This document shows, piece after piece, positions 522 through 27,204 of a DNA stretch of 39,191 nt. This DNA is from Neoconidiobolus thromboides FSU 785 (taxonomy: Eukaryota > Fungi > Entomophthoromycota), in contig MU626436.1 of the NCBI GenBank assembly GCA_025603075.1, positions 1-39,191 on the forward strand, written 5' to 3'. Below the pieces are notes generated by a model, which saw only the letters and a list, made by a program, of their open reading frames with translations, made no database searches and had not been told where the DNA came from. Made by a program: the position numbers and the translations under genes. Each line of letters begins with the position of its first letter. The stretch's first letter is position 1.

Positions 522-1680
522 TATTATTATAATTGTTATTATTGATTTAAATTTGATATAAAATTATGTTATATTTCTTAAGGTATTTATATTATTTCTT
601 ATATTTGAGCTTTATAGAACAATATAACAAATATAACTAATATTATCATTTATTCTAGATGTTTTCTAATTTTAAATTGTAATCTTCCGCTATTTTTTTA
701 TTTTTGCGTAATAAATGTTATTTTTAGTAATGAAATTAATTTCTTAGAAATTATGTATATTTATTGATTGGTGGTGATAAAATGCTAAAAATAAACTTAA
801 AAATAAGACTCAAAGTATATTTAAAATTATACACAAATATTTAAAGTAATAGTAGATTAAATATTTATTTATAACATGATAATAATAGTCTTTAATTTTA
901 AATGATAAATGATATAATATTTACATAATTAATTTATTAATCTTATTATAGCTTAAATGTGACTTTGATAGTAATGTATTAAATTTTTATCTTTAATTAA
1001 TTTTTACCATCATTTTAATTTTATTGAAAAATAATATTATGTATTGTATTTAATTTCAGATGATTTAATAATTTGCTTCGAAAAAAAGTTAATGTTGCTA
1101 TTGTGATTTATTTAGTTATTATTACAGTTTCTAAAGCAACTTGTATTTAAATACAAACTACCTTACATTTACTATCACATATTTTATCTTAATATGCTTA
1201 AATATTAGTATTAAAAAATAAGGTTAACAAAAAATTGATTTGATACTTTAAAATAGTAATAAAAGGTCTTCAAAACAAATTTATACCTATTTGGTATTCG
1301 AAATTTAGTAGATAATGTAATTTTTTAATATTTTCGATCAAGTTTTAACACCATTTTGTTATTTCAAACACTGCCTCTTTACCACACATATTGATAATAA
1401 AAGCTGCAATAGTAGATTGGCTTTATTAATACTTATAAATGGTAATTCATGTTAGTATTATCTGAACTGCTTATAATAGTTTCATTTTAACTTAAGCTTA
1501 TAACTTTAAATAAAAGATATGTATAATTTTATCAAAATAATAGTTCACAGTAATAAAAAACATCCAAAACATTGCAATAAAAGTTAATTTAAAAAATAAC
1601 TATATACTATGTTTTTACAAATTATGTTATAATAAACCCTATTTGTAAATAGTAAGCAAAAATGTGTTTCAACAAATTAA

Positions 1681-1752
1681 AGGTCCCACCGAGAATCGAA
1701 CTCGGATTACAAGGATCAAAACCTTGGGTGCTAACCATTACACCATGGAACC
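1681..1752 (-). tRNA. tRNA-Gln (anticodon TTG), intronless
   Basis: Reverse complement GGTTCCATGGTGTAATGGTTAGCACCCAAGGTTTTGATCCTTGTAATCCGAGTTCGATTCTCGGTGGGACCT. It has an acceptor stem, the anticodon arm CAAGG-TTTTGAT-CCTTG and a T-loop GTTCGATTC. Confidence 0.97.
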
Positions 1753-2076
1753 CGATGTAACTGTCCATACTGGTTTTGAGAGTATATAAATCACAACTCT
1801 ATTAAGCATCTCAAGTATGTTTAAAATGACTTAGTGAGCTATGAATTTTAAAGTAGTATCAAAAGATAAATCAAGAGCATTTTTAATATTATTAATTTAA
1901 GGTTTGAATTATATGTTTGTCATTTTTTTCAAACATTATCCAGCTAAATTGTACCTTTGTTTTATTAATTGATGCTAAATAAAACATTTAGTAGGTTAAA
2001 TTCCAATTTTCTATTAACTAGGTTTAATATGTAAATTATTTATACTTCAAATAGTACTATTTGAAAAAATGATTAA

Positions 2077-6380: not shown

Positions 6381-6463
6381 TGATCAGGATGGGATTCGAA
6401 CCCACGCCTCCGAAGAGACCGCGGCCTTAACACGGCGCCTTAGACCAACTCGGCCACCTGATC
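6381..6463 (-). tRNA. tRNA-Leu (anticodon AAG), long variable arm, intronless
   Basis: Reverse complement GATCAGGTGGCCGAGTTGGTCTAAGGCGCCGTGTTAAGGCCGCGGTCTCTTCGGAGGCGTGGGTTCGAATCCCATCCTGATCA. Acceptor stem GATCAGG/CCTGATC; anticodon loop TTAAGGC. Confidence 0.97.
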
Positions 6464-6849
6464 TTTGCTTAGATTTATAAATTTATCAATGTACTATTTT
6501 TTATTTATTAATAAAATTTTAGGTAAAATAGGGAATGAAACTAAATAGATTTAAAATTGTACTGAATTTTCAAAGTGAAATTTTCAAGCTTATTTATAGA
6601 CTGTTATTTTTTTAATAAAGTAACTATCTATATTTGTTAAGTAATTTTTTAATATATATATTTATCAAATTAAATTATTAAACCTATACTATTAAAATGT
6701 CCCCTTTATTATTTATCATTGGGTTTAATCTTAATTTTCAAATATCAATTTTAAAAAAAAATCCCATATCTGTTTTGAAACTCAAATTTTAACGTCATTT
6801 AATTATTTTCTAAATAATTCTCTTTCAATCAAAAGAATATATCTAAAAA

Positions 6850-8166
6850 ATGAGTCAAGCAAGCAAAGTATTTATGCAAATTGCTATCAATGGAAAGAAA
6901 GGTAATAATTTAGTTATCAATAATCAAATATATTCTAGTTTATTTTTTTTATTACTACAATTTATTTACTCATTCTTTCTCTCTTTATATAAAGCTGGCA
7001 AATTAACTTTTAAATTATTTTCGGATGTACCAAAAACTAGTGAAAATTTCAAAGCTTTATGGTAAAATTTTAACATTGACTAAATTTTATTTCCTTATGA
7101 TAATCAATAAATTCATAATAGTACTGGTGAAAAGGGACGTTGCTCAAGAACCAATTATGATTTAACTTTTAAAGGTTCTGTATTGTAAGTTTTAAAACTT
7201 TTACTTTTTGTTATCCTTTAATTTTGATTTTTTTTCTTATAGTCATCGTGTTATCCCTGGTTTTATATCCTTTTTTTATTATTTTATTAGATTATTTTAT
7301 ATATTATTGACTTTAACTTTATTTTTTTATTTAATTTTAATAATATTACATGGCTCAAGGTAGGTTTTATAATAATGTAATAATATTTCTTTTTTTTCTA
7401 ATAGTATTTTATTTTATTTAGGTGGTGGTAAGTAACAATATATTAATTACAACTTAAGATAGTAGTAAACTTTAATTCAAAGACTTCACTCGTGGTAATG
7501 GTACTGGTGGTTTATCTATTTATGGCGAAAAATTTAAGGAGTAAGTTTTATTAGTTAATATTTTATTAGTGTATATTAAATTTACTTTTATTACTTTTAT
7601 TACTTTTATTTAGTGAAAATTTCATTCACAACCATAGCAAAAGAGTAAATTAAGAATATATTATGTTAATAGAATATTAGAATTTCGAACTTTCTATTAG
7701 GGTTTATTAAGTATGGCTAATGCTGGACCTGTAAGTCAATACAATTTTAAATAATATTCGTTAATAATTTTATTAATTTCCAATTAGAATACTAATGGTT
7801 CTCAATTCTTTATTTTATTTAAAGATGCTCCATGGTAATTAATAATAACATTCTATTATAATAGAATATTAATTAAATTCATCAAAAACAAAAATAGGTT
7901 AGATGGTCGTCATGTTGGTAAATAGCTAATTAGAATAAGAATAGAATTAATATATATTTAATAATTATTTTATTAGTATTTGGAGAATTAGAATCCGGTT
8001 TTGAAACTTTAGATGAAATTGAGAAATTAGGTAGTAACAGTGGTACTACTAAAGTAAGTTGTTAAAATAGAACTTCATATAAAATCAATTAAAATTAACT
8101 TTTATTTTATTAAATAAATAGGCTACTATTAAAATTGAAGAATGTGGGGAAGTTAAAGAAGAATAA
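6850..8166 (+). CDS. Single-domain cyclophilin (peptidyl-prolyl isomerase) of the divergent-loop type; 13 exons
   Basis: Spliced product [175 protein letters not shown]. This requires 11 GT-AG introns plus one AT-AC intron. Confidence 0.96.
7265..7349 (+). other. U12-type (minor spliceosome) AT-AC intron, 85 nt, phase 0
   Basis: The 5' end is ATATCCTTTT (U12 donor consensus RTATCCTTT), there is a branch-like CTTTAAC at 7311-7317, and the 3' end is ...ATATTAC. Removal joins CCT GGT TTT to ATG GCT CAA and restores [13 protein letters not shown]. Confidence 0.9.
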
Positions 8167-8208
8167 ATTTTATTCTTTATAATGACAATATAAAATAGCA
8201 AGGTTTTT

Positions 8209-8812
8209 TTATTTAATTAAAAAATAAACTTGAATTTGATTACTTAGTTTATAATATTCATTCTTGATTTTTCGAATTAAATAACATTCAACAAAATAAG
8301 CAGCTGAATAGAAAATAGAAAATTATTAATAAATATTATAACTTATTAAAATAGAAATAAAAGAATCTTACTATTTTGAGGGATTAATTCAATATTAATT
8401 GTAGTATCAAATTCAAAATAATAGTTATCACACCAAATAATATCTTTCTTATTTAAATTATAAACTATTTGTCTTTCATCTGGATATTTTATCTAAAAAA
8501 TAAAAAATAAAATAATATTAATATTAATATTAATATTAATATCCTATTTTTTTGTTAATAATTTAATATAATTATTATATTACCATAACTTTTAGTTCTT
8601 CAAAATTTATTAAATTTATTACATTTCCACTCAATTTTAAATTAAATTTGGATATCAAATTTGATACTATAATTGGGTTTAATTTATTTGGTATTGGTTC
8701 AATTATTAATTCAGATTGAACTTGATATATATTTAATAAATTAAATGGAGGTAATTGAAATTTAATATACTATAATAAATAAAAATAAATTAATATTAAT
8801 ATTTTATATTTA

Positions 8813-26319: not shown

Positions 26320-27204
26320 ATGGCTCAACTAAAAACATTATCTTACGCCCTTTACAGTGGTGAGGAACATAATCTATGTTTTTCTCCATTTGCTTGGCGT
26401 ACCCAGTTAGCTTTAAAACATAAGGTAGTTTATAAGCTTAATATTGAATGATAACTTGACTGTTAATTAGGGCATTGAGTTTGATGAAATTAAAGTTAGA
26501 TTTAAGGATATTAATTCTATAATATCAAAGTTAACGTAAGTGTAATTCATAACCCTAGATAATTGCGAATTCTCATTTTACTAGTGATAACAAATGGAAA
26601 AAAGTTCCAGCAGTTCAATTCAGTACTGGTGAGGTAGTTTTTGACAGTAGAACCATAGCTGATGACTTGGAAAATAAATATCAAAATCAACCCAAGTTAT
26701 TTCCAAATGGTACTCAACTAGCCCACTTTTTGGAGCATTATGTAATGGCCAATTTTATGGTGCTAGGAGCTGCTGTCTTGGACACCGAATTCTTGACCTT
26801 TAAAAAAGAAGACCAAGAGTTTTTGAAACCTATTTTTGATAAACTTAATTATGTGATTAAACCTAAGGAAGAAACATATCCGAAAATTGCTAAGTTTTTA
26901 AAGCCTATTGAGTTGATGCTAAAGGAAACCCCTTTTTTTGAGGGAGAAAAACGTAATTACTATTATTATTAATCTTACATGCTATTTATCTTTTTGTTTA
27001 GCTACTTATAGCGATTATATTGTGTTTGCATTCCTTCAATGGTTTAGGGTGTTAACTCCTTTACATTACAAAAATATCATTGAAGATGCAGAAGATAAAA
27101 CTTTATTTAAATGGTTTGAAAGTATCCTTGATCTTAACAATGGTTATGCCAGATCTTTCCCAGTAAATACTCAATATGGTGAATTTGCTTTAAAAAATAA
27201 CTAA
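26320..27204 (+). CDS. Glutathione S-transferase, LigE/beta-etherase-like class, copy 1; 4 exons
   Basis: Spliced product includes CFSPFAWRTQLALKHKGIEFD, KVPAVQFSTGEVVFDSRTIADDLENKYQNQPKLFP and EGEKPTYSDYIVFAFLQW. This resembles the LigE pattern SPYVWRTKYALKHKG...VPVI...DSWVIAEYLDEKYP as I recall it. Confidence 0.88.
27086..27191. repeat. Left arm of a perfect 106-bp inverted repeat (partner at 29115..29220)
   Basis: Base-by-base comparison shows ATGCAGAAGATAAAAC...GGTGAATTTGCTTT is identical to the reverse complement of 29115..29220. Confidence 0.9.

Follow-up and report, generated by a model that had tools for sequence, protein, structure and literature searches.

A probable U12-type AT-AC intron within the gene for a single-domain cyclophilin in the early-diverging fungus Neoconidiobolus thromboides

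Introduction

Minor introns and minor snRNAs are present in Zoopagomycota, Glomeromycota, chytrids and Neocallimastigomycetes, and there are none in Dikarya (PMC10639083; bioRxiv 10.1101/2022.10.12.511939). These surveys agree with the premise of the original prediction for the locus described here, namely that yeasts and most Dikarya have lost the minor spliceosome, which only some early-diverging fungi keep. Minor introns have been counted at 249 in Basidiobolus meristosporus and 205 in Rhizophagus irregularis (PMC10639083), and U12-type introns are also known in Phycomyces and Rhizopus (PMC10639083; PMC2846911). AT-AC ends together with a U12-type 5' splice site define the U12 class (PMC3584512; PMC2846911); its introns have either AT-AC or GT-AG ends, never a mixture of the two. 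The optimal distance from the branch site to the 3' splice site is 11-13 nt (PMC3584512), and the classic U12 classifiers limit their branch scan to positions -40 to -5 (PMC2846911).

Minor introns also occur in other peptidyl-prolyl isomerase genes. In human and mouse, the cyclophilin-family gene PPIL4 contains one (MIDB, PMC6717393 supplement), but the exon flank GGA/GTATCC (a slash marks the splice site here and below) puts this intron at a different site from the intron described below; it is GT-AG and belongs to a different paralogue. PPIA, PPIB, PPID, PPIE and PPIH are absent from the MIDB list (PMC6717393 supplement). An AT-AC U12 intron has also been reported for peptidyl-prolyl isomerase genes of Phytophthora, a distant eukaryote (Russell et al. 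2006, cited in PMC2846911). The flanks printed for the two P. sojae AT-AC introns, however, are ...CTGGGG/ and ...GTTTCG/ rather than TTY/ATG, and the introns that the PMC2846911 supplement gives for Phytophthora, Phycomyces and Physarum include none at TTY/ATG. The paper on insect U12 introns says nothing of cyclophilin. No paper was found in which PPIE (or cyp33) is listed as a minor-intron gene, or in which U12 introns are ascribed to Conidiobolus or Neoconidiobolus.

The intron described here, the fourth of a cyclophilin gene of N. thromboides FSU 785, resembles the U12 introns known from early-diverging fungi: it is a short AT-AC intron with an RTATCCTT 5' site, it lies among major-type introns, and its host is outside Dikarya. 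It is unlike them in that its best branch motif is 33 nt from the 3' end, against about 11-15 nt, and in that it is in phase 0. That fungi outside Dikarya have minor introns is established knowledge, and intron 4 is already part of the public gene model.

Structure of the cyclophilin gene

The window, that is, the whole stretch of DNA that was analysed, comprises 39,191 nt and is the whole of scaffold MU626436.1 (GCA_025603075.1), with a G+C content of 24.5%. The gene model agrees exactly in span with the NCBI annotation, which gives a product of the same length with a PF00160 (Pro_isomerase) domain. The domain match includes the QGGDF core and identifies the product as a cyclophilin-type peptidyl-prolyl isomerase; its spliced translation is 59% identical to the cyclophilin domain of PPIE over 104 amino acids. 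The exons are small, just 6-77 nt. In the gene model, the 11 introns other than intron 4 are 55-93 nt long, start with GTAA or GTAG (GTAAGT-like) and end with AG. The features of the locus are collected in Table 1.

Table 1. Features of the cyclophilin locus and its surroundings, in window coordinates
Feature	Position	Strand	Description	Evidence or remark
tRNA-Gln(TTG)	1680-1753	-	farther from the cyclophilin gene	Rfam
tRNA-Leu(AAG)	6381-6463	-	start codon of the cyclophilin gene about 390 nt downstream	Rfam
Cyclophilin gene	6850..8166	+	13 exons, 12 introns, 175-aa product	spliced gene model, RNA contigs, NCBI annotation
Exon 4	7243..7264	+	22 nt, encodes (F)HRVIPGF; final codons CCT GGT TTT, end 7264	
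Intron 4, probably U12-type AT-AC	7265..7349	+	85 nt, phase 0, 92% A+T	spliced contigs and DNA contigs
5' splice site of intron 4	7265..7273	+	ATATCCTTT; 9/9 positions equal the U12 AT-AC consensus	unchanged in variant allele
Best branch-site match	7311..7317	+	CTTTAAC (consensus CCTTAAC)	unchanged in variant allele
Degenerate A/T-only branch candidates	7328..7341	+	TATTTAAT (A7334, 15 nt) and ATTTTAAT (A7340, 9 nt)	unchanged in variant allele
3' terminal AC of intron 4	7348..7349	+		window sequence, RNA and DNA contigs
Exon 5 microexon	7350..7359	+	10 nt, ATGGCTCAAG (ATG GCT CAA G)	letters between joints in RNA contigs
Intron 5, major-type GT-AG	7360..7421	+		RNA joint
Exon 6 microexon	7422..7427	+	6 nt, GTGGTG, then another GT-AG intron	RNA contigs

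The catalytic core of the enzyme is built from exons of 22, 10 and 6 nt, and both microexons are confirmed by RNA. Removal of intron 4 restores the core sequence, which makes the enzyme dependent on this splice. Several cyclophilin paralogues in the same organism, seen in DNA and RNA contigs as loose ends at 7496-7540 of the window, read contiguously ...CATGTGCCAAGGTGGTGACTTCACC and have neither intron 5 nor intron 6 of the window's gene.

Removal of intron 4 from RNA

Assembled contigs (not raw reads) of four RNA runs with three organism codes were aligned to positions 6700-8300. Intron 4 is removed in spliced contigs of the RNA runs X1, X3, X4 and X5, and also of X11, a run apparently filed as DNA. 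The contigs read ...GGTTTT, then ATGGCTCAAG, GTGGTG and ACTTC, which is the predicted joining of exons 4, 5, 6 and 7; in the alignments the joint runs from 7264/7266 to 7482/7488 with GGCTCAAGGTGGT in between, or with GGCTCAAGGTGGTGATTTT in a diverged relative. The junction from 7264 to 7350, which had been proposed as the check on the intron, is thus seen in contigs from five runs. All 12 junctions of the gene are found in contigs. Introns 2-12 appear as joints in the four RNA runs, while the support for intron 1 is a loose end in X4 together with a joint in X11, whose filing as DNA is in question and which also contains the spliced form. The nearby GT-AG alternative (GT at 7260, AG at 7289-7290) reads into a TGA, as originally described, and no RNA contig uses it.

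In DNA, intron 4 is present in contigs of X6, X7 and X9. The X6 contig, likely from the source sample, is identical to the window. The X7 contig, from an independent sample, covers 6860-7700 and repeats intron 4 letter for letter, so that the AT and AC letters, for which an assembly error had been considered, are no such error. X7, a second strain, also has a 9-nt insertion, TTACTTTTA, at window position 7581, where intron 7 contains the repeat TTACTTTTA-TTACTTTTA; this is a length polymorphism in a major-type intron.

A variant allele, found in DNA contigs of X9 and in RNA contigs of X4, differs by about 7% within intron 4. It has six substitutions (7277, 7281, 7286, 7301, 7309 and 7321) and an insertion in a T run. 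None of these changes falls in the 5' site, in CTTTAAC or in the last 28 nt. The contrast between no changes in these last 28 nt and six in the 45-nt middle part is suggestive only (Fisher p = 0.08).

One X4 contig (record 11, 7243-7457) is partly spliced. Intron 4 and the beginning of intron 6 are still in it, while intron 5 is gone, with its joint running from 7357 to 7420 (cut +2). Since intron 5 has already been spliced out, this contig represents RNA and not contaminating DNA, and the two microexons of 10 and 6 nt can be joined before the outer introns are removed. The depth of the contig is 39.8 versus 737 for the spliced contig, or about 5%. Minor splicing is slow, and the retention of intron 4 in a small fraction of transcripts is compatible with this; the retention is not specific to the U12-type intron, however, because the major-type intron 6 is kept too.

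Splice sites and intron class

Intron 4 is therefore present in DNA, is absent from mature mRNA and has a perfect U12-type 5' splice site. It starts with ATATCCTTTT and ends with ATATTAC in the window sequence (7265-7349). The original description of its start, its TAC end and CTTTAAC placed 32 nt before the 3' end is correct in every part.

The terminal dinucleotides are AT at 7265-7266 and AC at 7348-7349, a placement in which a cut ambiguity of 2 nt is settled by consensus only. Because AT can be read on either side of the joint, the mRNA by itself does not fix the position of the cut, and AT..AC, TA..CA and AT..AT all formally fit; AT..AC is the sole placement that matches a known splice-site consensus. 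Phase 0 is the least common phase among minor introns, and the phase of intron 4 counts against its assignment to this class. On the combined evidence, 7265-7349 is very probably a U12-type (minor-spliceosome) AT-AC intron in the single-domain cyclophilin gene of an early-diverging fungus. The claim of such an intron between the F and M codons thus draws support from its 5' site, its ends and the spliced contigs.

Branch site

The distant spacing of CTTTAAC is the weak point of the U12 assignment, and the candidate branch adenosine is A7316, A7334 or A7340. CTTTAAC ends 32 nt before the 3' end of intron 4, which puts A7316 33 nt away. The same adenosine is obtained from the best match to UCCUUAAC, which is ACTTTAAC, with 6 of 8 positions exact and 7 of 8 when wobble is counted. 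The two A/T-only candidates nearer to the 3' end, TATTTAAT and ATTTTAAT, would pair with U12 only through G.U wobble; in an intron with 92% A+T, words of this kind are to be expected by chance.

Between CTTTAAC and the real 3' end there is no AC or AG dinucleotide, so the 3' site in use is the first possible one downstream of CTTTAAC. This first-AC placement favours the distal site. No RNA structure that would bridge the branch site and the 3' end was found, the fold of the intron being not above shuffled controls.

The same site in other cyclophilin genes

Metagenome contigs were scanned at the F-M site with a relaxed pattern, HR[VI]I..F followed by RTATCCTT; the strict pattern, HR[VI]IPGF followed by RTATCCTT, gave no match in these contigs. 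The relaxed scan returned 27 loci, made up of 17 chance matches and 10 PPIE genes (L007, L008, L009, L011, L017, L019, L020, L022, L027 and L029). The latter read ...FHRIIPDF/GTATCCTT, with a U12-type 5' site, and represent at least four lineages with 71-81% nucleotide identity. Introns of more than 2.4 kb in some of them suggest that the contigs come from animals; the Atlas PPIE clusters list both chordate and Mucoromycota.

In L019, RRM exons are found upstream, and the exons flanking the intron align to human PPIE residues 68-196 and 197-299. The PPIE intron is thus between F196 and M197 in human numbering, which is the phase-0 site of intron 4. Two of the PPIE introns are complete, one of 100 nt in L019 (1972-2071, - strand) and one of 336 nt in L009. 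Both are textbook U12 GT-AG introns, reading GTATCCTT...TCCTTAAC and then 13 nt that end in the 3' AG.

Intron 4 and the PPIE-type introns are alike in position and phase, in the surrounding sequence HR(V/I)IP(G/D)F-M(A/C)QGGDF and in having a U12-type 5' site. They differ in that the PPIE introns are GT-AG, have the canonical TCCTTAAC followed by 13 nt and belong to a paralogue that bears an RRM. The question raised with the original prediction, whether the intron position is common to U12 introns elsewhere, is answered in the affirmative by these ten genes, the comparison being one between paralogues. The shared position suggests the hypothesis, drawn from sequence comparison, that the phase-0 intron at F-M is an old minor intron that has switched between the AT-AC and GT-AG subtypes.

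Other U12-like sequences in the window

In this AT-rich window RTATCCTT is not rare, with 8 copies on both strands versus 5.6 expected, so the motif on its own proves nothing. The copy in intron 4 is significant because it stands exactly at an exon end and is accompanied by spliced contigs in five runs. The seven remaining copies were inspected and rejected as U12 introns, and the statement that the window has no other such intron holds under the strict RTATCCTT rule. Three of the seven are coding, and the rest are not at an intron start: they are inside an ordinary GT-AG intron, antisense to a TRM5/TYW2-family ORF, or have no reading frame leading in.

The three coding copies, at 27122 (+), 29184 (-) and 31643 (-), belong to paralogous sequences that end ...KT(L/V)FKWFE-SILDL(N/Y)(N/D)GYARSFPVNTQYGEF; each has GTATCCTT in frame as coding sequence, with no intron. 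In the ordinary GT-AG intron 3 of the cyclophilin gene, GTTATCCTTTAAT at 7208-7220 combines U12-like 5' and branch words, which are probably there by chance in AT-rich DNA. The Rfam search of the window, at gathering thresholds and at E<=1, found no snRNA gene and only the two tRNAs of Table 1, and no gene for a minor-specific protein lies in the window either.

Alternative explanations

An assembly error or a pseudogene, in which the AT and AC letters or the intron itself would not be real, is hardly credible: nothing was found in its favour, and it is refuted by the independent DNA contig of X7, in which the intron is identical, and by the spliced RNA contigs of a gene that is expressed and fully spliced. 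Another reading has no canonical AT-AC intron at all: the cut would lie 1-2 nt away (TA..CA or AT..AT), or reverse transcription or contig assembly would have produced a false joint at the 2-nt AT repeat. This reading finds some room in the fact that AT fits either side of the joint and that the RNA evidence consists of assembled contigs. It is nevertheless very improbable, given that the identical junction recurs in five runs with four organism labels, two of them with diverged sequence, at a depth equal to that of the other exons. The junction is also required for the reading frame and the conserved catalytic core, AT..AC is the only placement with a known consensus, and a repeat of 2 nt is too short for reproducible template switching.

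The more serious alternative, although still an improbable one, accepts the junction and assigns removal of the AT-AC intron to the major (U2-type) spliceosome, which is known to act on rare U2-type AT-AC introns, in an organism whose minor spliceosome could be lost or reduced. AT-AC ends also occur outside the U12 class (PMC3584512), and the 33-nt spacing and T-rich 3' part of intron 4 look closer to a major-type layout. U2-type AT-AC introns, though alike in their terminal dinucleotides, are without the ATATCCTT 5' site found in intron 4, a site that fits the U12 consensus throughout and is sharply unlike the GTAAGT-type U1 sites of the 11 neighbouring introns of the same gene. The textbook U12 introns at the identical F-M site of PPIE-type genes, and the retention of the minor system by related fungal lineages (PMC10639083; bioRxiv 10.1101/2022.10.12.511939), also argue against removal by the major spliceosome.

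Proposed splicing mechanism

If intron 4 is spliced as a U12-type intron, the fungus would have a working U11/U12/U4atac/U6atac system, and the steps may be outlined as follows. The U11/U12 di-snRNP would bind across the short intron, with U11 on ATATCCTTT and U12 on a UCCUUAAC-like branch site. Positions 7265..7273 are the expected pairing site of U11 and later of U6atac, which would take the place of U11 at the 5' splice site when U4atac/U6atac.U5 joins. The branch adenosine would then attack A7265, and the exons would be ligated after C7349, in the first AC that follows the branch site.

Biological implications

The F-M minor intron may date at least to the ancestor of fungi and PPIE-bearing eukaryotes, being AT-AC here and GT-AG in PPIE. 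A tentative proposal, somewhat less probable than its opposite, is that this intron predates the split of the cyclophilin paralogues and that the minor spliceosome of this fungus tolerates either a branch site 33 nt out, with the first AC taken, or an A/U-only branch site that pairs with U12 through G.U pairs. If true, a distant or A/U-only branch site would relax a rule that is held strict in animals and plants. The F-M site shared by PPIE-type genes and a fungal cyclophilin provides a case in which deep conservation, and switching between the AT-AC and GT-AG subtypes, can be tested.

For the fungi, intron 4 adds an RNA-verified minor intron from an entomophthoralean-type species and thereby supports the retention of the minor spliceosome in the entomophthoralean lineage, as published surveys of early-diverging fungi lead one to expect. 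With its distant branch motif and the adjoining microexons of 10 and 6 nt, it is a compact natural substrate from an AT-rich fungus with short introns, on which it may be asked how strict the rule of branch-to-3' distance is, and how strict intron definition is.
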